64,000 nt of DNA from Bugula neritina (taxonomy: Eukaryota; Animalia; Bryozoa), in NCBI GenBank assembly GCA_964035545.1, contig OZ037766.1, positions 8,546,722 to 8,610,721 on the forward strand, read 5' to 3'. The notes under the pieces are model-generated. The model saw only the letters and a list, made by a program, of their open reading frames with translations. It did not search any database and was not told the DNA's origin. The position numbers and the translations under genes were made by a program. Below are positions 6,901-52,450 of the stretch, one piece after another; position 1 is the first letter of the stretch, and each line of letters starts with the position of its first letter.

Positions 6901-8000
6901 TGGGAGTCTATCATCACTACATGATTTAATTATAGTTTCAATGTTATGAAGATCAGCATGGCTTGAATGTAAGGGAAATAATTGGCTTAGTTTTATATTT
7001 ACCTTTTATTGAGATTTATATTAAACAATTCTTACATGTCAGTTTCAGTATGTTTTTGTATGTCACCTATATTTAAAATTCATTTAATGCTTGAATTTTT
7101 TAAAGTTAAATAGTATTTTTGCTGTTAAATTTTCCTACAACTGGAAAGTTAGCCAAATCTATTAAATTCTACATTTGATAATTGAGATGAATTTGATTAG
7201 TTGGGCGACTTTCAGCAACCTTGATTTTGGGCTTAGTTTCTAAACTGGATAATTTTTCAAGATTTTGGACATACTGTATTTCCTTAGTATACCTGGGCCG
7301 TGGGCTTTGGAGCAGGCAAAGAGCAATCTAGCCAACCACTTCCTGTTGGTTGGCCTGACAGAGCAGCTTGGAGAGTTCGTTGCCCTTCTTGAGACCATGC
7401 TTCCAAGATACTTTTCAGGGGCTTATGAACTATACACAAACTGTAAGTAGGCTACTATTCAAAATGGCGCTAATTATAGAATTTTCAATGAATTCCATGT
7501 AGAAAACGTGATCCGTCTAACTAACAGCTATAGACTGCATTATTTTATGCTTGTTTGTATATTTTTCTGTTTCTCAACATAGCTAAGCTTGGACACCTCA
7601 GAAAGACCAAAGATAAAATTGCTCCTTCTAAAGAAACCGTGAGAATTATAAAGGAGTCACTCATTTATCAGTTGGAGCATGAACTCTATGAATTTGCCAA
7701 AGAACAGTTTAATTTCTTAAAACAAAGAGCATTGAAAATAGATGAAAATGAAAGGTACTGTGTTATTTATTTTGTTATAATTAAGGGTAGCAACCAAATA
7801 TTGAAAATTGCTCATGTTACAATTTTACAACAGCCTGTTTACTATATTATGAGAAAATTACATTTTTCTTTTTATCTAATTTCCATAATGAAATTTTTTC
7901 CTACTTCTTTTTCATGTTCTATCTTTAACTTATACTGTTGTTGGTGTTTTCCAGGGCAATCATTATGAAGCCTCTATTCAAATATGAAAAGATAGTATGA
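3924..8000 (+). CDS. HS2ST1: Heparan sulfate 2-O-sulfotransferase (359 aa)
   Basis: Exons 3924-4062, 4632-4681, 4907-5101, 5667-5752, 6138-6273, 6591-6691, 7288-7442, 7583-7754, 7955-8000 sum to 1080 nt. N-terminal type II anchor; 5'-[15 protein letters not shown]; 3'-[24 protein letters not shown]; QVPFFCG; HLRKT; ends FKYEKIV. Probable 5'UTR intron 3065-3755. Confidence 0.93.
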
Positions 8001-32680: not shown

Positions 32681-35050
<2,370 letters not shown>

Positions 35051-37205: not shown

Positions 37206-38770
37206 ATGCTTAACATTTTAAACGTTTAGGCAGAAGTCTATGGGCGTGGCTATCCCTATTGCCTTTGGTTTTGAATACCTTTGACAATTAAAATATGGAA
37301 CACCCAGGAACACTTATGGTTATTGGAATGCCTCATTTGGTTTACAGTGTGAAATTTGTTTGACTATAGATTAAGTGGATGTTGTGTTAAATTGTTAATC
37401 TAAGTTCGCTCTGGTGTCTCTTTTGGTTCTTGGTAAGAAACTACCATGATTAACTAGTAAGGTTTCGTGTACAGATGTTGATTCACTGCAAGCAGCAGAC
37501 CTAGTGGTTATTAACATATTTTGGCAGTCTTTTGTAATTTTATCATAGGTTATTGCAAGTGTTGAGTGCTGTTCTTCTTGCAAGATTTTCATAAAAAGAT
37601 TTAGTCAATGGTTTTTGCACCTCTGTTTGAGAAGCTGAATGCCAAGCTCGGACCATGCCTTCATGATACTCTCCCATCCCCTTAATCCAGCAATAAAGTT
37701 AACAGTCCTGTGCTGTATCAGTTCTAAGGGCTTGATGTCTTTGGCTAATGTTGCAGCCCCTACACTTCTACAGTGTCTGCATATTCTAGTATGGGGTGGC
37801 GAAACTAGTATAAACCAGTAGTCTACCTACTTTGGGAGCCTCATGCGGAATGTGTTTACGTGCTCCAAGAATTTTTGTACCGTCATCATTTTTTAGTTTA
37901 ATATGCTGATCAGATTTAAGGTTTGGCTACATTTTCACACTCGGGTATGTTGCTGTGTTGACTCAATTCATCTTAACTTCTCCTAGCTTATATAGAAGTC
38001 TGTACTTTTCAGCTATAACTTTGCATTTATTTTTGCTGAAAGGCATTTTCCAGTCAACTGATCATTTTTGTATGTCATTGATGTTGTCCTGAAACCTCAC
38101 AGCATCTTTTTTTGTATGAACAGCCTGATACAGTAATATATTATCATCATATACGCTTACACTGAAGTTTAATGTTGGTAGGAGATCGGTAATGTATATT
38201 AAAAATAGTGTTGGGCCCAGGACTGAGCCTTGTGGTACACCTGAAGTTGCCTCTAATTCTGAAGAAGATTGACCTTCGTAAACTGCTTTTTGCCTTCTAT
38301 AGGTCAGAATATCTTGAATCCAATTTGCCAGTTGTGAGTGTATAGCTGGTATTAAAGGCAGTTTTTGTATTAGAAGGGCATGAGGCACCTTGTCAAAGAC
38401 TTCTTGAAGTCAAGTGCTGCAATTTATGCCTGTGTGTTGTTTTTGTTGCTTGCTTAGTCTTTGCTAGCTAATGGTATGTGACGCAGAGTTGCATTTCGCA
38501 AGATATACCATGTTGTCTGAATTCATTCAGCTTTTGGTTCATATAATGTAGTATAATGTGCTCCCATCATTTTGTATAGGATACTGGTAAGTGATTTGTG
38601 ACGATAATTACTTGCTGCCTGTTTATCTCGGCCTTTGTGTACTGGGGTAACATATACCAGCTTCCACGGGATAGGTAACTTTCCAGAATCAATGAAGGCT
38701 TGGAATATGTTATTTAGGCACGCAGCCGATATTATTCCATCAACAAGTAAATCCAGTTTGTGATTCTATC
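37205..38770 (-). mobile_element. 5'-truncated, frameshifted CR1/L2-group LINE related to the intact element
   Basis: Broken RT: NWIQDIL..RRQK, SGVPQGSVLGPTLFLIYI, degenerate YDDN; C-terminal KILQEEQHSTLA...NHGSFLPRTKRD parallels RILQSEATHSTLA...YHQSFLPRTIRD of the intact ORF2. Confidence 0.88.
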
Positions 38771-40039
38771 ATATAAAAGTAGTATTACAATTATTAGTGA
38801 TACTATTACATTCCAGGGGTATAGTTTAGACACTCTAGAGTCTAGAGCTTATAAGTATATCAAATTAAATATTTAATTTTATTTTGATGTTTTATTTATT
38901 TATATTTAAAAAAAGTGCAAGGTTTACTTGAGCATTCTTATTTTAATTTTATAAACCTTAACATGCGTTTAAAAGGGTTGGCAAAATCAATTTATTTTGA
39001 CACTGATAAAAAACATTTGCTTTTAACTTATATTCCAGCAATAACTATTATTAATACTATTGTTGAGCTACAAGCTGATAACTAGCAATTTAGTTCATAA
39101 AGGAAATTTGAACTAAACCCAGCAACCATTTTACGGGTTTACCATCATCGCTATGTACAAGAATTATAATAAATGCCTTTTCTGTGTATTTGGTAAAATT
39201 TGACATATTTTTATGTCCTATGTAATTGGCTACACAGTTCTTCTCTGAGGATTTAGGTGTGGTAGGTAGTACATTGTGTTGAAAGTTGAAAGGGTGTTTT
39301 ATCTTTGACTAAAAATGTATTTTCAAAATACGAAATGCTTCTAGTAAATCTTTTTAGTTTTTAAACTGTTTGACCAAATCAACATTTTAAAGCATATACT
39401 TTTATTTTATATCAATACAGGGCTGATATATTAAATACAAAAATGTTACATATGGTTTATATTGTATGTTTTTGCCTTTGATAGTCTACTGGCAAGTTTT
39501 TTATTCTCTATAAAATAAAATCAACATGAAAGTTCACAAAGATTCAATAATTATATGTTTTTGAGTATAAATAATTGTTATATATTAATGAGATTTGATG
39601 TTCATTATGGCGTTCATATAACAATGTGAAAAACTGATTACTTTTAGGTAGTGTACAATTGTTAATGGCGCTCAAACAGGATAGTATCAGCACGATGAAT
39701 AGCTTGTAGGCCTAATGGAATTTTGTGCCCAGGCTTGTCAAATTGCTGCCACATTACTCAATATACAACATGCAGCCACAAAAGAGCTTATGTGAGCTCT
39801 TATTTCCGAAATGTATCATGAAAAAAGCTGGTTGCATGATTTGTTTAAATATTAAACTGTGAGATATTATTTAAGAACATAAAAAGAAAGCTTAATGGCA
39901 TTTTCAAATTTTGCATAAATTTTGAAGCTCTAAAATCCTTACGTGACTGTATTTGTTAGAAAAAGCAACTCTAAATGGAAAAAAAACTAAAGGAAATACC
40001 TGTATTATTTTTCGTTATGTGGTTTTGTTGCAGGTTATA

Positions 40040-43000
40040 ATGTCTGAAAACAAACCAAATCGAAGCAAAGATAATACAAAGTCATGTAAAAACTTTTTGG
40101 AGACTTTAATTCGCCTGTCTATTCAAAAATCCCAAGAAACTCTAGATAACATCAAAGGATTAATACTAGGGCTATTGGTAGGTAACTCACGCATTTGCTT
40201 GGCACAGATGGCAACCTCTTTGTCACCATACCACTAAAAGTTTCTGAAACTTATAACAGGCAAATTTTGACAGTGTTCGGACAGGTAAAAAACAAAACTT
40301 GACTATTTTATTAGTCAAGCAATCGTATCTGAGGTGCTCACGATTTTGATTTCTTTACAAAGCTAAATTTGCAACGAAACTTACCAGATAAAGCTATTTT
40401 TTCTTCCTCTTTGACATCTAAGGCGGCTTATTTCAGAAAATTTTCAAAATGTTTTGGGAAACTATGTGTCATCTGTATCAAGCAATACTTGATATTTTGT
40501 ATCTCCAAAGGCTGCTTTTAGGTGACTCACTTGTTCTCTACATTCTTTTAATTTGCTTACCTTTTATCTGCAGAAAAGCAGCAACTAGCAATAAGTAGAG
40601 TTGCATTAGCTCACCCATAGATTCGTATTTAGCAGTTTCTTACTTAAAGCCTGAAATATAATGGTATTGGCAGTTGTAAAGTAAAAGTGATTTAATGTTA
40701 TAATCCATGTATGGCCAACAGCACACAAACTGAAAGGTGTAAGATTTAGTTCAGGGGCATATGTTTTCTAGTGATGTTGGTACTCAAAAACTGATGTTTA
40801 TATTCAGATTACAATGTTACATACTGTAGTGCTGTTGACTAATCTTAATTATGAGTATTGTTTTTTGTATTAGCCTTTTAAAATCTTAATTGTGAGTATT
40901 ATTATTTGTATTAGCTTTTTAAAACAACAACCATCAGGTATAAATTGTATTAGTGTGAGAAGGCAATACCTATGAGGTTCTCCCTCCAGTCGATGAGAGT
41001 TTACTCGAATATTTGTTTTGTTCTATGAGCGTATATGTAGCGTCACTATACTGTTTTACTACTAAATTGTCATCTGTTGCAGGAAGGCACTGTGCAACCT
41101 GATATTTTCACCATTCGTCTTCAAAAAGAACTCGATGCTCAACGACAGCCTGGTCTTGCAGCTTTTCTTAAGGTATTTGCCTGAAATGGTGTATTTAAAA
41201 ATATAGCTGCTCATGTATCATGTTCTATAACTTTATCAATTGTAGTTTAGCATTTGTGTTACAGCAGTATTTTTAGGAAACCAGTTATGGTATTGGGATT
41301 ATTCCATTTTTCTAGAATAATTTGGTTATTTTCAAAATGATCTGTTTTGGATTTTTACTTGAGTTGTTCATACTGAATATTGCCATTTGATTTTCTCATT
41401 TAATATAATTGTAGCAATAATACTTCTATATACTTGTTTGATCCGATGCTTTACTAAAGTAAAAATGATTTATGTTGATGTTGCTATAAATTTATTTTTA
41501 TTATTCATATTTTGTTTATAAAAGGATTAATTGTTGTATTTTGTTTTGTAGAAAAGTTTACCAGATTTGCGGTTAGCAATTAGTCGGAATGAGTTGAGTA
41601 TTGATGGTTTAAATCGTCCAAACATACAGATACCTGTCTCTAGTCTTCGAAGCAACGTGATGCAGCCTATGGTTAGGGTATGTGTTCTCTAAGGTATTCA
41701 TAGTGTTTGCAATAGTGCAAGCATTTCAAATATACTCACAACAGTTGATCTGCATTTCTCTTTTTTCTTTAATGTCTCTACTTATATTTAACTGAGCTAA
41801 ACAGATCTCCTTACGATGTTTTGCATACTTTATGCAAATTTCAACATAAAATTATAAGTTTTCTTATATCTTTATATGAGCTCCTTAGCAAAATCCTGCT
41901 CAACTTTTATTGATATTAATTGTGAATTTTCAACCTTGATAATACTAAATAAATAAACAGAAACGCAGTATTGTAGTAGTAATAAAAATCTAAACATCAA
42001 ATTGATGTTGTATGAGAATTCTTTGAGTTGCTAGCTGCTTTGATTAACTGTGGCATAGCTGAGCATTTATTAGCTACAAAAGCTGAAAATTAAAACATTT
42101 CTGACTCTAATTTTAGTTGTAAACTAAACCTATCGTAGATCACTCTGTCGTTTATGAATATTATGGGCCATTTTCTTTGACTGTACAACTACTTTCAGCT
42201 TTTTTTTCATGAAATTGTAAAATACAAATTGCTAAGCTGGAGAAAATTCATCAAAATATCTAATAACTTTGGTAACTCTCTGAATCCATTGTCTCTCAAT
42301 ATGCCCTTGAAGTTATATCAATAAGGAAGCACCAGTTTGTCACAAACACTCTTCGTTTTACAAATTAATATTCAATCCTTGCCTTACATAACATGTATTT
42401 AAATATTACAATTACCCTGATCAATTCTGAAGGCATAAGGCTATTGCACAATAAAACATAGGAGTACATTGACAATGAATTATGTATGTAGGAAATATGT
42501 ATGCCTGTGTCGATATTTTTAGTATGTACATTGATACATTGATAAACTAAACTATTTTTTTTCTATAAAACTACAGTTCACTTCTAAGGTTCGCTATTTT
42601 GGGACTTTAAGGAAAACAAACATTAGAGGTTGAAAATAGAATATTACTGGCTTGAAATTTCTAGAAGCAATGCTTGTATATTTTATTATTTTAGTTTTAC
42701 CTATCTGAAGTTTTGTAAAACCAACTTGAGACCTACGCTAATCCAAGAACAGCTTGTTAGCACACAAATGATAATTTGCTGGTTTGAATTGTGCTGCAAG
42801 AATACAATTGTGATACTCACAACATATGCAATAGTCATATGAGCTGAGGTGCTGATGTAATGTATTACAGTATATTATTGATGACATTATGCTAAACATT
42901 CATCTCAAGATTTTATTTAGTAGTTTTTTTAAATAGATCTAACCTAATAATGACATGCAATAAAACCTGCACTAATTATTTTTAGAAGTATGCATTTTGC

Positions 43001-46000
43001 AATTGCTAAACTTTAATTAAGCCACAATTTTTAAATCAATTACCTGGGTTTTTCATTGCCATTTGCGTTATGCAGCCTTGTAACTTTAAGTGTAAGTTTG
43101 CACCAATTAGCGTGCAAGACCTAGTCTGCAAGTGTTAGTTGACTTATTATTTGCTAAAGATCATGCAGGATTTGTTTGTGAAGTTAATCTTAAGTAACAT
43201 GTAGTTTCAGTTTGCTTTGCTGATTTGAGCATAGATAAGCTGTTTTTCATATTGAAAATAAATTTTAAAGAATCACAATAATTCATTAATTTTAGCAGTT
43301 CTCCCATAGCTCTGAAAGGGCAGCTAAAAGAAAAAGTGCAGACGACAGTTTAGATGCTAGTAACATGGTGAAACCATCAACTTCAAAAAGGTGATAAAAA
43401 TTTGTTTTTTATGTATTCTACTATCCAAAGCTATGATGCCCAGTAACCACTATATATGCTTTCAGTAAAACCAGTGGACATGGCGAGATATTTCATATTT
43501 TGTTTTGTAGGGAAAGAGCTTCCATATCTGATGAAAAAGTATCTAAAAATATACAGTGTGGGTTTTGCCTTAGTGAAAACGAGAAGCTAACGGACCCTAA
43601 AGTGTTACCATGTTCTCATGTGCACTGTCTACCTTGCCTCACAGCTTCTGTTGAAACTAATAACATTGTGAGATGTTCCCAATGCAGGTACGCTAAAATT
43701 ATTTATTTTGAATTGTTTTGCCTTACATGTTATGCTATTTTATTTTCAATATTTCAATTTTCTACTACGAAAATGTTATACTCAATTAAGCACATGTACA
43801 ATGTATCTTTGCAGTGATACTCATGATACGATTGATCTGACAAAGTTGCCTTCTGCTCTTTCTTCTGAGGAAATTAGGCATTGGTGTAATGTCTGCACTG
43901 AACAAAGCTTGAATGGCGAACAAGCCCTTGTTTACTGCAGCGACTGCATGAAAAAGTATTGTTACAAACACCAGCAGGTTATTGTAAAGAAACTATATTA
44001 TTTGAATTATTATCACTTCTTTTGCAGACAAACTTTAAACAATTCATAAAAATGCATATTGATTTGTTAGAGCTGATATTTTTATTGTTTATGCCGGCTT
44101 TATTTTGACATGTTGCAGATGCATGGGGAACTTCACCGCAGCCACCATATAGTTAGTATAAATATGTACAGCTTACAAGGTGACAAGATACAAGTGAAGT
44201 TTTGTGCTCTGCACCATGATCAGCCGTATACATTGGGGTGTAAAGTATGCCTGGAGGTCTTCTGTGTGCAGTGTCTAAGTAACAGGCAAACCTGTAGTGC
44301 TGGTCAGTAAGAGTCCTCTTTTTATATTACTGATAAACATAAGTGAGTGGCTTTGTTCCTAATTATAAAGACAGTAATTTAATATTTGTGAAAGCCTTAT
44401 TGTTATAATTTATATATTTTAAAGTTCTTTTACCTCCAAGCAGTTTGTCGTATCATTAGAAAGCTTGAGAGTTACTGATTTCATGCCAAATGAGGTTTTG
44501 TACACTTAAGCAATATGCTTTATAATACAGGGGGCCAAAAATGTCTCAAAAAATGGTATTATTTATTCTTGCAGAATGCATAAAATTTCCTTTTCTAAGG
44601 CACATATTTTAATGCTGGTAAAGTCAGTAGATTTGTAATAATATAAACAAGAGTACTAGAAAAAAGAGGACGATTTTATAGAGTATTGCATTTTACTGGT
44701 TTGCCTAATCTTCCACCTCTTTTGTGGACTTCTATTGTATTATTGTACATTTGAAATTGTGTAATAGTTGTGTGCATATGCAAGAATATGCGGTTTAGCA
44801 AAATATGTAAATAACTTTAACCAATGATTCATTGGTTAATTTTTAGGTACTCATCATAACGTGCTGTCTCTAAAAGAACTCGTCAACTTCCTGAGAAAGC
44901 CAATAAATAAATTAAGTGAAAGGCTGATGAATAAAGAGGGTGCATTACTGAAACTTTTCAAGGTGACATCAGACATCATTTCAGAGTATGAAATTGAAAC
45001 TCAGAGCTTTGTGGCAAAGTTGCATGAAAATCGAGACTGTCAGGTAAGTTGCCAAGTTATCTCAATTATGTAATGTGTGTTTCTGGCTGCCACAAAAATT
45101 TAACATTTTTTGACTTTTTAGTTTAGAAATTCTGAGACCCGGGGATTATTTTTTGGGTAGCACACAGCTCATTGTGTGTCAGCTCATTATAGATGATTGC
45201 TTTATTATATGCAATGTTAATTTTTCAATAAAAACTATTTCATCGCTATTTGCTAAGATTCATAGATTGAACTTGATTCATCTAAATATGTGTAAATTAG
45301 TCAAATTTGGATTATTATTTTTTTTTAATAACACCATTCAAGCTTGACCTTTGGGAGTACTTGCGTAGGAAAAACTTCATGTCGGTTTTAAACTTCTAGT
45401 TCTTGTGAAAACCCTTGGCAATAAAATCCTGTAAACTTGTGCCCTAAACTGTGTGCTGGCAAAATAGAGTAAAGGTTTCAAAGTAGCGCAGGAGCACTTT
45501 TGCTCTTCCTGGGTTACCATTGATTTTTATGGGATGAGATTCACTAGCCTAACTAGCTATCACTGAGCCGCTTGTTGGTAAAAAAATAAGCATGGTCCTA
45601 TAGCGTGGAAGGTTGTTCTAGTAAAGTATTAAACCTAGTGTTTGCAATTAGCAAGACCTCTTTCTATATTACGTGGAACTAAAGATCAGGATTAGCATGT
45701 AAAGCTAATGTATTATTTACTAGCTGAACTGAAATTTCACTTATCCCAGAGAATTCTAAAAATATTGCAACATCATCTAGAACTTTCATAAGTTGTGGTT
45801 TTTGCAATTTGTATTAGGCTAAGCAAAAAATTTTAAATGCTTTTTCAAAGGTTTCATATAGTAAGTATAAATTTACAAACTTGAACTTGTAAAAAATTAT
45901 ACATATTGTATAGTTGTTATACTATATTACTTATTATATCATTGCACAAAAAGCTTTAAAAGCATCATGAGATATAATGTTCATCTTAATAATAATATCT

Positions 46001-48769
46001 TATCGACTTATCGATAATAGTGCATGTACAAAAAAGAAGGCAATTCCCAATAATAAAAAAATTTCATCAAGATTTTGCCGAACAGGAAAAATAAAGATGT
46101 ACAAGCAACAACCAGAAATTTTAGAATACTAAGTGGTTTTGAAAAATCCAGATTTAATATGTAAAGAATTACACTATAGTTGTAACTTGTCACATAGCAC
46201 TACACTTCTGATGCACATAGAAGTGTAGTGTAAGTGAAATAAGTGCTTACGTCAAAACTGAGGTAGTAAATATCAACAACAAATTAGCTTAGATATGTAA
46301 TTTTCTGCTGGTTTAGAACTTAAGTTGAAAATTATTTGCTGTGTTTTGCATTGGCATACAACTCAATTGATTCGAGGCTATACTAGCAGTACTGGAGGTG
46401 AGGTAGTACTTAGGACTTTGATGTAAAATGTTATCAAGTGGTAAGGTGTGCAAAGTATGCTTGAGCTATAGAAGGTAAGAAAACTGTAAAGCATAAGTTA
46501 GTTATTGGCTGTCATAGTATTAAAGGTAAGCAAAGCTTTTTTAGATGTCGGGTAGTTGATCAGTTTCTTGGCTTATTGATAATTGTCAGAGATGTATGCT
46601 TTTAGCTAGCTGCTCTTAGAGATGGATACTCCTCAGTAGAAGCAGATTTCGTAAAAGAAAGAGGTGAAGTTTTAAATCAGATGAAGGAGTTCGTGGAAGT
46701 CAGAGTAGAAAAAAACTTATCTGAAATTTATCATCATCAGAGAAGAATCGAAACCAGATTCAAACACAGTCACATGGTGTGCATCCACAGTTGGTTTGGT
46801 AGTTGGTTGTGTTGCTACTTAAATTATGTGTTTTGTTTTGTGTCACTAGTAGTACAGCACAGTGATACTTCACTGTTGACAATATTATGTTACAGTCAGT
46901 TATGTTACAGTCAGTGTTGATACGGTAGGGTGTGGTAGTATACTGCAGCTTATAACGTGATAAGCCCAAGTGCTACAAGGAGTAAACAAAGTATGCTATG
47001 TCTAAGGTGGCATTGGTACATACTGAATCCTGGTGACACCACTGAAAACTTAATCAACTTATTTACTGTCTGACTGAACAGGCAATACAGGGTATAAGTT
47101 CTCACCTCAGGTTGATGGGCAATCAGGTGTTGATAAAGGTTTAGCCCCACTGCAAATATAAGGTTCTTATTATGTATTGTATAGACTATGCCATATACAT
47201 GCATATCATAAGGTGATGACGAGACATTTTTGTTTGTAGTAATACAATAAAAAGTTGGGATTATATTTTGTGGTCAATCATTATAAATGAGTAAATTGGT
47301 ATTTCAGGTTGATATTATAAAGGGGCACAAAGATTCTAAGGATGAGCTTAGCGTACTACTGGACAATAAGCTGGCAGAAGTCCCTAAGCTAGAACTTAAA
47401 AACTTGGCATTAGCTAGTAAGAGTGAGTAGCTTCTAAAACTTTTTTAATAGAATTAGGAATGAGAAATAGGTAACATTTGAAATATATTTACTTTTGCCG
47501 CAACATTGTAAAAACTCTGGTAATAAGTTTTGTGACTCAGCATTTTGTAAGTGGATATACTGTGAAAAAATTTCTTTGCGGGCATTTCTGAAATAACATA
47601 AAATCTGGCATTCATAGAATTCATATTCAGATAAACTTCTTTTGAATTTCTTCAATTCCTAACTTTTAGATATTTACATCTTGTAGAAAAATGTAGAAAT
47701 TTGGAGATAGAAATTGTACCTACTAGAGCTCTGGTAATAGACTTTCTTTCTGGCTCAGCAACTCTAGAACCTCAGAGTTTAAAGCTGTGTAAACAAGTTC
47801 CGACAAATCAATGTACAATTTCTGTATGTTTCTATGCTGATAACACGTACATCTCATTTGATAATGGTTCTATTGCTATACTTGACTCTGACTATGACAT
47901 AATGCCTTCGCATTGGGACTACATGGGTGCACTAGACCACGTTGAAGGGATAGCTATACTGGATGATGTGATGTACTCATTGGTAACACTTGAGGATGAG
48001 TCCGTCTACATATACGTACATGACCTGAAGGGAAATTATGTAAATCACTGGGAACACCCAGATCTGGCTTATTCTTATAATAAAATTACTGTTGTTGGAA
48101 ACAAACTTGTCGTGCCTGATAGGCAGCACGGACAGCTGATGGTGTATTCTCTTTATGGAGAGGTTCTCAGTCAAATAGCCTGTGGACTGAACACCTGCAT
48201 GGCGGTAGCATGTGCTAATTCTGAATCGGTAGTTGTAAGTGACTCTGAAGCATCGACGGTTTTCATCATCAACATTGTGACAGGAGAAACCTTATGGTCA
48301 TGTCAGACAGTAGGAAAACCACAGGGAGTTGTGTGCTACAGAAATTGTTGCGTTTTGGTCTATAGTAGATCCTCTGAAATGTTATGCGTTTTGGATATAC
48401 AAACAGGTTGGTGTGAAACTGTAGATCATAAAAATGTTACCGTAGAATTTACTTTTGATACATTGTTCTACCTGGATTGCAAACATGTATGCCAAGTTTA
48501 GAATGTGCGTGCGTGTGTGTAGTAATACGCAAAGCTAACATGATATCGTAAAATTGTAAACAGGCTTCAAGTAGATATCTGTTAGGTCTCATATAATTTT
48601 TTTCAAATATAGTAAATCTTACTACGTTTTGTTTGTTTCAGGAAAGTTGCTATCTGAGATTTCAAATGCTGAGCTAAAGGGTAGTATTTATGACCTTGAC
48701 ATTAACGGAGACATGCTAATCGTACCTAAATGTTATGTCGAGCAGGTGCTATTTTATCAGCTGTTATGA
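40040..48769 (+). CDS. TAFH-domain TRIM protein: TAFH, NLS-like linker, RING (C3HC4), B-box1, B-box2, coiled coil, NHL-like beta-propeller (767 aa)
   Basis: Exons 40040-40177, 41083-41172, 41552-41677, 43296-43390, 43511-43687, 43815-43977, 44119-44302, 44847-45043, 46606-46776, 47308-47422, 47687-48406, 48642-48769 sum to 2304 nt; all GT-AG, one open frame. RING CGFC...LPCSHVHCLPC...CSQC; B-boxes CNVC..CSDC..YC..H and CALHH..C..C..C..C; beta-rich C-terminus with GKPQGV. Additional upstream exons are possible (acceptor at 40033). Confidence 0.8.
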
Positions 48770-51889: not shown

Positions 51890-52450
51890 TTACATGCTCC
51901 CATCATTAAAGTACTCATAGTCGCTAAAACCAGTTTGAAATCCACCTGCTCCGCCGTTTCCACCAAATCCTCCACCACCAAATCCATTGTAGTTTCCACC
52001 ACCAAATCCATTGTAGTTTCCACCACCCAATCCATTGTAGCTTCCACCACCCAATGCATTGAAGTTTCCACCACCCAATCCATTGTAGTTTCCACCACCC
52101 AATCCATTGAAGCTTCCACCACCCAACCCATTGTAGTTTCCACCACCCAATCCATTGAAGCTTCCACCACCCAACCCATTGTAGTTTCCACCACCCAATG
52201 CATTGAAGTTTCCACCACCCAATCCATTGTAGTTTCCACCCCCAAATCCTTGTCCTCCATACCCTAATGCTTGGGCTATTAAACCATTTGCAACATTCCC
52301 TAAGGTGTTGCCTCCAAAATTATTCCCAACGCCATTTCCATATCCCAAGTTTCCCCCTCCGAGTAAGGCACCACCATTCCCATTAAATCCAGCAGCAGAA
52401 ACAATGTAAATCAAGCTAACTGCAACCGCGATGCTTTTTAGGAACTGCAT
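51890..52450 (-). CDS. Secreted glycine-rich repeat protein (186 aa)
   Basis: Single coding exon preceded by a tttcAG acceptor at ~52458; signal peptide MQFLKSIAVAVSLIYIVSAA; 11 x GGG[N/S][Y/F]N[G/A][L/F]; acidic/aromatic tail FSDYEYFNDGSM. Confidence 0.85.
   Translation of the reverse strand: MQFLKSIAVAVSLIYIVSAAGFNGNGGALLGGGNLGYGNGVGNNFGGNTLGNVANGLIAQALGYGGQGFGGGNYNGLGGGNFNALGGGNYNGLGGGSFNGLGGGNYNGLGGGSFNGLGGGNYNGLGGGNFNALGGGSYNGLGGGNYNGFGGGNYNGFGGGGFGGNGGAGGFQTGFSDYEYFNDGSM
51980..52243 (-). repeat. Coding 24-bp minisatellite, 11 units
   Basis: Plus-strand unit like CAATCCATTGTAGTTTCCACCACC, with alternating Tyr/Phe variants. Confidence 0.95.

Follow-up and report, generated by a model that had tools for sequence, protein, structure and literature searches.

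TRIM proteins normally begin at the RING finger, and the best-known precedent of domain capture by a TRIM gene is the TRIM5-cyclophilin A fusion (TRIMCyp) of owl monkeys and macaques, in which a TRIM gained a ligand-binding domain from a host housekeeping gene, and with it a new specificity, when a retrotransposed intronless cDNA replaced its C-terminal recognition domain. To our knowledge, TAF4/TAF4B and the ETO/MTG/Nervy proteins are the only ones in which a TAFH domain has been described; TAF4 also has a C-terminal histone-fold domain that pairs with TAF12 and builds TFIID. TAFH is an alpha-alpha-hub; the one in TAF4 recognizes short D-phi-phi-x-x-phi-phi motifs within disordered activation domains, and the one in the ETO family recognizes (D/E)-phi-x-phi-phi motifs in HEB, N-CoR, and STAT6 (PMC7948954).

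In the window (the whole stretch of 64,000 nucleotides of Bugula neritina that was analyzed), three exons with TAFH similarity lie a short way 5' of a ubiquitin-ligase gene of the RING/B-box/coiled-coil/NHL kind. We consider it likely that they belong to a single gene of 12 coding exons on the forward strand (40040-48769) with a product of about 765 residues, and a domain order of TAFH, basic linker, RING, B-box 1, B-box 2, coiled coil, and NHL-like propeller is predicted with similar assurance. The exon lengths add up to 2298 nt (765 codons plus the stop), and the split junction codons, examined singly, contain no stop.

TAFH exons copied from the neighboring TAF4 gene

Exon 1 (40040-40177) codes for the start codon and the first third of the TAFH domain, exon 2 (41083-41172) for the middle third, and exon 3 (41552-41677) for the last helix and a tail. 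The original prediction had described three small phase-0 exons here, and we recovered exactly the translations that it gave, with AG...GT bounds on each and all six splice sites intact and canonical. Scored individually against Pfam TAFH (PF07531, cut-off 27 bits), exon 1 matched profile positions 1-35 (E=4e-7, 30.4 bits; its locus reached 29.7 bits in a profile scan of the organism's own genome) and exon 2 the consecutive positions 36-65 (E=1e-3, 19.3 bits), as parts of one TAFH domain, while exon 3 by itself gave no match to this profile (positions 66-90 expected) and was assigned by its identity with a TAF4 exon and its RNA splice to exon 2. The best solved-structure match was in both cases the TAFH domain of human TAF4 (2P6V), at residues 14-54 for exon 1 (E=5e-5) and 56-84 for exon 2 (E=0.08), in agreement with the TAFH identity first proposed. 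The hydrophobic core positions, judged by eye, are conserved relative to TAF4. Exon 3 lacks a stop codon and ends in the donor AGG/gtatgt, and the transcribed exon 1 probably extends 5' to at least ~39869 as a 5'UTR.

Only three TAFH loci were found in the genome: MTG/Nervy on contig C5, TAF4 at C2:8.64 Mb, and the one described here. The parent TAF4 gene is located on the opposite strand, at a distance of ~55 kb. Amino acid identity with its exons is 33/46 (72%) for exon 1, 25/30 (83%) for exon 2, and 38/42 (90%; 118/126 nt) for exon 3, which has a single difference within its first 91 nt; the copy keeps the exon boundaries of TAF4, and its intron 2 can be aligned with the homologous TAF4 intron. 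The TAF4 derivation that had been proposed is thereby upheld: at the level of sequence, exons 1-3 are shown to have been copied, as DNA, from three TAF4 exons of the same genome, with a partial inverted duplication from the neighboring gene as their origin. The histone-fold profile of TAF4 (PF05236) exceeded its cut-off only in the parent gene (C2:8639845-8640798), with one further weak, sub-threshold match on contig C1, and was absent throughout the window, as the original prediction had noted. Therefore, the gene in the window carries a TAFH domain but is not a TAF4 protein. Compared with TAF4, the copy has an overall dN/dS of 0.14, and neutral evolution is rejected (P<1e-15); judged by this substitution pattern, it is under purifying selection and functional as coding sequence. 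The duplicated segment came to lie 3.3 kb 5' of the RING exon in a divergent TRIM-NHL gene; the copied exons would now be spliced via exon 4 into the RING exon, with an internal Met of TAF4 acting as the start codon.

The TRIM module

The C3HC4 RING finger is encoded by exon 5 (43511-43687), identified by Pfam zf-C3HC4 (22.7 bits, cut-off 21), by its paralogues, and by RNA joints, with all eight metal ligands present. A RING exon had been correctly predicted, with bounds that are corrected here. No ATG precedes the RING within exon 5, and eight of nine paralogues start within their RING exon; the closest RING paralogue has an ATG-less RING exon with a coding exon spliced before it. That N-terminal exon of the paralogue looks foreign. 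If the fusion holds, the RING in our gene is not N-terminal.

Exon 6 (43815-43977) probably codes for B-box 1, with RNA joints on both sides, conservation in a paralogue at C6:10.825 Mb, and a match to Pfam ANCHR-like_BBOX (E=8.7e-5, 23 bits) below the 27-bit cut-off when scored exon by exon. Exon 7 (44119-44302), also with RNA joints, probably contains the main part of B-box 2; its zf-B_box score (E=1.1e-3, 19.5 bits) falls below the cut-off of 24.1 bits because an intron splits the domain. The Cys/His patterns of the B-boxes are visible and conserved in the paralogues. Exon 8 (44847-45043), covered by an RNA contig to 45043, holds the end of B-box 2 and the start of the putative coiled coil, which, as read from the sequence, continues through exon 9 (46606-46776; paralogue exon alignment E=2e-6) and, as coiled coil or linker, exon 10 (47308-47416). 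The splice sites of exon 10 are inferred, with an alternative donor at 47422, 6 nt further on and in the same phase. All three exons align with paralogue exons.

About five blades of an NHL-like beta-propeller are encoded by exon 11 (47687-48406), as indicated by paralogues and by an AlphaFold2 model of this exon only (pLDDT 87), whose top Foldseek matches were the NHL domains of Thin, TRIM71, Brat, and TRIM2 (E 1e-9 to 1e-7, TM 0.6-0.69). Pfam NHL and filamin profiles found no match on the TRIM half, where the propeller gave only weak PQQ_2/WD40-type matches; the propeller of the original prediction is thus NHL-like by its modeled fold but leaves the Pfam NHL profile unmatched. Exon 12 (48642-48769) adds the last propeller strands and a TGA stop, and the same terminal exon, with the motif ...LIVPR....VLFYQL, is conserved in nine paralogues. 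At least 144 exons paralogous to exon 11 were found in the genome. The TRIM half, which is intact and divergent, belongs to a TRIM family that is characterized by an NHL-like propeller, counts at least 144 genes here, and appears from sequence comparison to be restricted to bryozoans.

Linker exon and probable junction between the two halves

Exon 4 (43296-43390), whose sequence is unique in the genome, codes for a basic, Ser-rich linker (KRKS, KPSTSKR). None of its 31 codons is a stop in the reading frame that the RING exon imposes. Its acceptor is a tandem TAG/CAG, so that in transcripts the exon may start at 43299. An ATG at 43365, in frame and with a good context (AAC ATG G), had been overlooked earlier. 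RNA evidence, over a stretch that ended before exon 9, came from a run, labeled only 'RNA?', of a relative belonging to another strain and ~5% diverged, in the form of assembled contigs in which transcript starts are not visible. These contigs contained spliced exons 2-3 and 4-5-6-7-8. The GT..AG joint 41172/41552 was found in two of them, of the copy's own type rather than that of TAF4, and the joints 43390/43511, 43687/43815, 43977/44119, and 44302/44847 connect exon 4 to exon 8. Depth was 36 in exon 1, 62 in exons 2-3 (owed in part, for exon 3, to the near-identical TAF4 mRNA), 82 in exons 4-6, 53 in exon 7, and 47 in exon 8. The joint between exons 1 and 2 was absent from the contigs, one of which is unspliced from before 40000 to 40148. 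Since a contig continues from exon 1 into intron 1 (40150-40300, depth 15), the run includes some unspliced RNA or some DNA.

The original prediction of an in-frame fusion is probable as a whole. Its phase-2 join to the RING exon was confirmed, the last 2 nt of exon 4 and the first base of exon 5 forming AGG across a joint present in the RNA contigs; the joint 41677/43296 (or 43299) between exons 3 and 4 was not seen in them, with no coverage between these exons, and its support is indirect. We regard one fused mRNA of the TAFH exons and the ligase gene as the probable arrangement, and its main rival, two separate transcription units, as rather unlikely: a TAFH-only gene of exons 1-3, ending by read-through into intron 3 with a stop 5 codons past exon 3, and a conventional TRIM-NHL gene with exon 4 as its first exon and ATG 43365 as its start (or, in a mixed version, fused and TRIM-only isoforms from alternative promoters). 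This would account for the unobserved joint and for the greater depth of exons 4-6 than of exon 1. The ATG also has A at -3 and G at +4 and gives Met-x(8)-ERASIS...RING, and paralogues likewise start 6-15 residues before the first Cys; moreover, three of the four listed substitutions between the two strains in exon 4 are non-synonymous, so that the exon is weakly constrained upstream of the ATG. However, the TRIM gene would then need a transcription start exactly at a T-rich TAG/CAG acceptor, as coverage, zero in 43200-43297, sets in at 43298, 2 nt past the predicted acceptor. Exon ends are also where other contigs of the run break (43977, 44115, 45043), as expected if exon 4 is internal. No canonical poly(A) signal (AATAAA/ATTAAA) that could serve a TAFH-only mRNA follows exon 3 before 41948, and between ~41800 and 43297 the RNA depth is zero; together with the lack of a stop in exon 3, this counts for the fusion, as do the missing ATG of the RING exon and the coding exon joined ahead of the ATG-less RING exon in the closest RING paralogue. 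The end of exon 3 and the start of exon 4 are both in phase 0, a match that, jointly with the open frame of exon 4, would be a coincidence of ~0.07 under two units. A TAFH-only product of 123 residues may have been kept by purifying selection for a long time, but this is the less parsimonious view.

It is very improbable that the TAFH exons are the dead remnant of a partial TAF4 duplication, kept intact by gene conversion from TAF4, placed here by chance, and transcribed as noise. The first 91 nt of exon 3 and ~15 nt of the preceding intron are near-identical to TAF4 between flanks of ~65%, which resembles a conversion tract, and the RNA of exon 1 partly continues into intron 1, but exon 1 shows no recent conversion, as its silent sites are saturated (pS 0.73), and its replacement sites are conserved (pN 0.15; Fisher 2e-9), with neutrality rejected for this exon alone at P about 1e-26. 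The splice sites and frame are all intact, the second strain has a spliced, paralogue-specific contig of exons 2-3, and the changes polarized by eye with human TAF4 are about as numerous on the copy as on TAF4 itself. An assembly chimera with its join between 41.7 and 43.3 kb is scarcely credible. Contigs of a DNA run, which may be the assembly's own source data and is hence not fully independent, have loose ends in intron 3 (41683, 41843, 42388, 42400, 42899), and no single listed contig spans this intron; yet these ends are consistent with a second haplotype, ~5% divergent, and with the TAF4 paralogue, overlapping exact contigs cover 41822-42400, 42573-43146, and 43117-43345, depth is 100-200 in every 200-nt bin of 40000-45999, and the window lies inside a 33.6-Mb contig.

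Predicted function of the probable fusion protein

Considering the known roles of these families, the RING would recruit a ubiquitin-charged E2 and the coiled coil would dimerize the ligase, while the N-terminal TAFH would add a second recognition module beside the propeller. The copy is expected, from its sequence, to bind the same D-phi-phi-x-x-phi-phi type of motif as TAF4. Its targets would accordingly be transcription regulators whose usual docking site on TFIID is TAF4, and it would ubiquitinate them or compete for them, in a putative role as nuclear E3 ligase or decoy. If natural, such a combination of the TFIID activation-domain docking site with a ubiquitin ligase would act on transcription factors that bind TAF4 as a ready-made degrader or competitor, and it offers an experimental handle, namely, whether the TAFH clients of TAF4 become substrates. 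A more speculative and improbable possibility is that TAFH serves as an integrated bait in an immune-type TRIM, trapping viral or symbiont activators or effectors that target TFIID via TAF4 and directing ubiquitination to them or to the complex; it would then parallel, in an animal, the integrated decoys of plant NLR receptors, and also TRIMCyp.

A true fusion would also show, in a clean and datable case, how a gene is born when a partial duplication is followed by exon capture, with the ancestral state known because the parent TAF4 gene is still next door. N-terminal domain capture would represent a second type of diversification in the greatly expanded bryozoan TRIM family, where it may recur, since the closest RING paralogue also has a foreign-looking N-terminal exon.

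Comparison with known systems

The joining of TAFH and TRIM, very probably in one protein, would be a new architecture without earlier description. We found no orthologue or similar architecture in the databases and literature searched. A set of 1.84 billion representative proteins contained no orthologue with more than 38% identity, and the TRIMs of the related Watersipora (600-626 aa) lack TAFH, all compatible with the lineage-specific gene originally proposed. The first 118 residues are paralogous to the organism's own TAF4 TAFH exons, with the same intron positions, but the predicted protein has a ubiquitin-ligase module instead of the Q/S/T-rich N terminus and histone-fold domain of TAF4 and, because the domain that builds TFIID is absent, is not a usual TFIID subunit. 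The only other described protein context of TAFH, ETO/MTG8/Nervy (TAFH, NHR2-4, and MYND), is represented in this genome by a separate locus on C5 with a MYND exon, to which exons 1-3, far closer to TAF4, gave no tblastn match.

The predicted order of RING, B-box, B-box, coiled coil, and six-bladed NHL-type propeller is that of the TRIM-NHL proteins (TRIM2, TRIM3, TRIM32/Thin, TRIM71/LIN-41, Brat), from which this gene differs in its unmatched Pfam NHL and filamin profiles, its apparently bryozoan-restricted multicopy family, and the added N-terminal domain. In plants, RCD1/SRO proteins (WWE-PARP-RST) pair RST, an alpha-alpha-hub related to that of TAF4, with an unrelated module of enzymatic type and so serve disordered transcription factors as a hub (PMC7948954). 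The resemblance is no more than an analogy, as RST is not TAFH and both the partner domains and the kingdom are different. In contrast to TRIMCyp, the gene described here would have gained its domain as a DNA-level copy with introns, added at the N terminus, and would have kept its original C-terminal domain.

Gene model and domain content

The three TAFH exons (E1, 40040-40177; E2, 41083-41172; E3, 41552-41677; forward strand) translate exactly as the original prediction had read them. Each is in phase 0, with a T-rich tract and AG on its 5' side and GT on its 3' side. When exons were scored alone, E1 matched positions 1-35 of the Pfam TAFH profile (PF07531; E=4e-7, 30.4 bits against a cut-off of 27 bits) and E2 matched positions 36-65 (E=1e-3); since these positions are successive, the two exons represent adjoining pieces of a single domain. 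The final ~25 TAFH positions are expected in E3, which received no Pfam score when run alone. The best match among solved structures was the crystal structure of the human TAF4 TAFH domain (2P6V), to which E1 aligned at residues 14-54 and E2 at 56-84, and comparison with TAF4 and 2P6V found the conserved core residues of the domain retained. Upstream lies a 21-codon ORF (39975-40040) whose TAA overlaps the main ATG at 40040 (TAATG), relevant only if the 5' UTR is contiguous, as in an RNA contig of ~39869-40148.

The following exon (E4, 43296-43390) encodes a basic, Ser-rich linker (KRKS, KPSTSKR) that is weakly NLS-like. The RING exon (E5, 43511-43687) is of the C3HC4 type and scored over the Pfam cut-off, while the two B-boxes (E6, 43815-43977; E7, 44119-44302), the second of which is split by an intron, stayed below threshold. 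They are followed, as read from the sequence, by helical exons (E8 to E10, 44847-47416), a 239-residue propeller exon (E11, 47687-48406) and a short terminal exon (E12, 48642-48769). All domain, structure and homology searches were run exon by exon, with the exons unjoined; of the profile matches anticipated by the original prediction, TAFH and RING were obtained, the B-boxes were sub-threshold, and the Pfam NHL profile did not match the propeller. The lengths of the 12 exons total 2298 nt (765 codons plus the stop), and none of the five codons split by junctions (AGG, AGT, GGT, AAA and GGA, checked singly) is a stop. Two neighboring ORFs are unrelated to this locus: a single-exon ORF of 376 aa (33920-35050, forward strand), which we take to be possibly a sulfotransferase-like enzyme, and a secreted-looking, repetitive Gly/Asn-rich ORF of 186 aa (51890-52450, reverse strand).

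Origin of the TAFH exons

When the complete 216-Mb assembly was searched in six frames with the TAFH profile, only three loci were found. Besides E1 to E3, these are the TAF4 gene (C2:8.642 Mb), ~55 kb away on the opposite strand, which begins with a Q/S/T-rich exon and also contains TAFH exons and the histone-fold domain of TAF4, and an MTG/ETO/Nervy orthologue (G000:C5:12310985-12315203, reverse strand, excerpt L012), in which the TAFH exons are followed by a MYND zinc-finger exon. The histone-fold domain (PF05236) was found at the TAF4 locus and not in the window, where the original prediction had also seen none; contig C1 gave a single weak match below threshold. Some open frames upstream of TAF4 (L010:6116-6761, reverse strand; G000:C2:8650116-8650761) look loosely TAFH-like by eye; they had no Pfam TAFH match at E<=1 and were not flagged by the genome scan.

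E1, E2 and E3 each pair with one exon of TAF4 and share its boundaries and phase, the identity rising from E1 (33/46 aa, 72% of nucleotides) through E2 (25/30 aa, 82%) to E3 (38/42 aa, 94%). Intron 2 can also be aligned between the two genes at ~60-65% identity with indels, and copying must therefore have taken place at the DNA level and not via mRNA. The proposed derivation from TAF4 is thus borne out by the parent locus itself, by exon boundaries and phases and by a homologous intron, and the origin of these exons is unusually well documented. The homology ends near the start of E1 and 7 nt past the donor of E3, and the new gene's start codon corresponds to an internal Met in TAF4. E4 derives neither from TAF4 nor from the 5' exons of paralogues and has no second copy in the genome.

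We sought a transposon-mediated origin, and nothing indicated a mechanism. Intron 3 is unique in the genome except for a 60-nt dispersed repeat (42946-43005), solo here, of which there are at least 39 copies (82-87% identity); elsewhere it often forms inverted pairs 3-4 kb apart, resembling the terminal inverted repeats of DNA transposons. A LINE-type dispersed repeat (37500-38770) with a reverse-transcriptase fragment (38062-38388, reverse strand) and at least 45 copies genome-wide (68-80% identity) stops 1.27 kb upstream of E1.

Selection and possible gene conversion

Compared with TAF4, the copy has an overall dN/dS of 0.14, and neutral drift since the duplication was rejected in every partition (P<1e-15). 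In E1, saturation is reached at silent sites (pS 0.73) against a pN of 0.15 at replacement sites, a difference significant for this exon alone (Fisher P=2e-9). A crude count of amino acid changes, polarized by eye with human TAF4, assigned ~6 to the copy and ~4 to TAF4, so by this measure the copy evolves not much faster than an essential gene.

Silent divergence falls steeply along the domain, with dS of 2.9, 0.7 and 0.16 in E1, E2 and E3. The last ~15 nt of intron 2 and the first 91 nt of E3 form a near-identical tract of ~110 nt (41537-41642 versus ~7590-7695, reverse strand, of the TAF4 excerpt L009) with 2-3 differences in total, one of them in the exon part, between flanks that are ~65% identical. 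This pattern suggests a short gene-conversion tract from TAF4, the paralogues being inverted and 55 kb apart, and is best read as either that or nucleotide-level constraint. The conservation of E1 cannot come from gene conversion. A high-depth RNA contig shared by the two genes suggests that the same tract identity exists in the strain from which the RNA came.

A probable single fused transcript

The RNA data come from one RNA-like run (X1, a library labeled as "symbiont metagenome" RNA-Seq) of a relative ~5% diverged from the assembly; the run is available as contigs only and represents part of the stretch, its alignment covering 40000-45999 (E1 to E8). Coverage there is exon-shaped, and GT..AG joints at 41172/41552 (E2-E3, two contigs), 43390/43511 (E4-E5), 43687/43815, 43977/44119 and 44302/44847 coincide exactly with the predicted exon boundaries. 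Two junctions had been singled out for verification in RNA: 43390/43511, joining linker and RING, was seen, but 41677/43296, joining E3 to the linker, was not seen in X1. Neither this nor the E1-E2 joint occurs in the X1 contigs over 40000-45999, and one contig continues from E1 into intron 1. Most of the depth at E3 (~577 of 640) must come from the mRNA of TAF4, near-identical there; a contig of depth 62 contains E2 in the version specific to the copy, joined by splicing to E3, and the contigs for E1, E2-E3, E4-E6, E7 and E8 all have depths of one order (36-82).

The TAFH exons and the TRIM exons are probably carried by a single mRNA. We favor this fusion because E3 lacks a stop and is followed by no canonical poly(A) signal before 41948, the RING exon lacks an ATG, E3 and E4 match in phase, an RNA contig starts at 43298, depths are similar on both sides and a paralogue provides a precedent. 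Reading on from E3 into intron 3 meets a stop after five codons, no AATAAA or ATTAAA occurs 3' of E3 before 41948, and X1 depth is zero over 41800-43297. There is no ATG ahead of the RING in its exon, while eight of the nine paralogues examined start inside that exon, 6-15 residues before the first Cys. The end of E3 and the start of E4 are both in phase 0, and E4 is fully open in the reading frame that the RING imposes; the chance of both is ~1/3 x 0.22 = 0.07. The 433-nt contig of E4-E5-E6 has its first base at 43298, which lies 2 nt within the acceptor (TAG|CAG|TTC), with zero coverage over 43200-43297, and further contigs of this run break at exon ends (43977, 44115 and 45043). Such breaks are the behavior of de Bruijn graphs where spliced and unspliced paths meet; we infer that the contig would begin at 43298 if the second AG of the tandem acceptor is also used by an upstream exon whose last two bases are a non-A and a G (E3 ends in AGG).

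Against the fusion stands an in-frame ATG of E4 in good context at 43365, which would yield a perfectly ordinary TRIM N terminus; we regard two separate transcription units, or a mixture of isoforms, as a minority possibility, of perhaps one chance in a handful. An assembly chimera is unlikely, since a DNA run (X2), possibly the assembly's own data, has overlapping exact contigs in every bin, and the loose ends of its contigs are consistent with a second haplotype and with the paralogous TAF4. All 12 of the indels listed between the X2 haplotypes are in introns and none in exons; a 406-bp segment of intron 1 (40301-40706) is missing from the second, ~5% divergent haplotype in X2.

The TRIM half and its family

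At least 144 relatives of the propeller exon occur in the genome, the majority arranged in tandem on other contigs, and the closest is just 36-39% identical, making this TRIM gene a divergent singleton. An AlphaFold2 model of the exon (pLDDT 87, alignment of 39 relatives) gave the NHL domains of Thin/TRIM32, TRIM71, Brat and TRIM2 as top Foldseek matches, and the last intron and terminal exon are common to nine paralogues. The family is small beyond this genome: with the propeller exon, HMMER found 304 matches among 1.84 billion representatives, none above 38% identity; the JGI metagenome contigs scanned with this exon gave no match, and a word-index search with the 126-aa open frame of the RING exon for transcript-derived fragments of 69-220 aa yielded no candidates.

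The nearest RING paralogue (62% aa identity; RING exon at G000:C6:10825289-10825429, reverse strand) also lacks an ATG, and an in-phase coding exon precedes it (L035:691-1119, reverse strand), so an N-terminal extension has a precedent in the subfamily. It may be a second instance of N-terminal exon capture in the family. That 5' exon has no Pfam match and contains the motif RKP(L/I)(L/M)IVNP(E/D)THD(I/V) twice, and no propeller exon was found within ~10 kb downstream of this paralogue.

Proposed function and comparison with known proteins

TRIM proteins dimerize through their coiled coil, bind a charged E2 with the RING and select substrates by their C-terminal domain. With a TAFH domain ahead of the RING, connected by a basic, Ser-rich linker, the ligase would acquire an additional binding specificity resembling that of TAF4. 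The product might then ubiquitinate regulators of transcription for which TAF4 is the docking site, or rival TFIID in binding them. TAFH is an alpha-alpha-hub; that of TAF4 recognizes D-phi-phi-x-x-phi-phi motifs in disordered activation domains (E2A/HEB, LZIP, ZF) (PMC7948954).

The architecture had been proposed as new. Our literature search found no relevant paper on TAFH combined with TRIM or RING, and the protein collections searched exon-wise hold no orthologue or fused relative; they lack this gene and its transcripts altogether, and the architecture may yet occur elsewhere. In all, the gene quite likely encodes a TRIM-NHL ligase that has captured the TAFH domain of TAF4. TAFH has been described in TAF4, together with the histone fold, and in ETO-type proteins, where NHR and MYND domains accompany it, and a domain survey lists no ligase context (PMC7948954). 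In contrast to the gene proposed here, the named full-length relatives in the bryozoan Watersipora subatra (600-626 aa) begin with the RING and are without TAFH.
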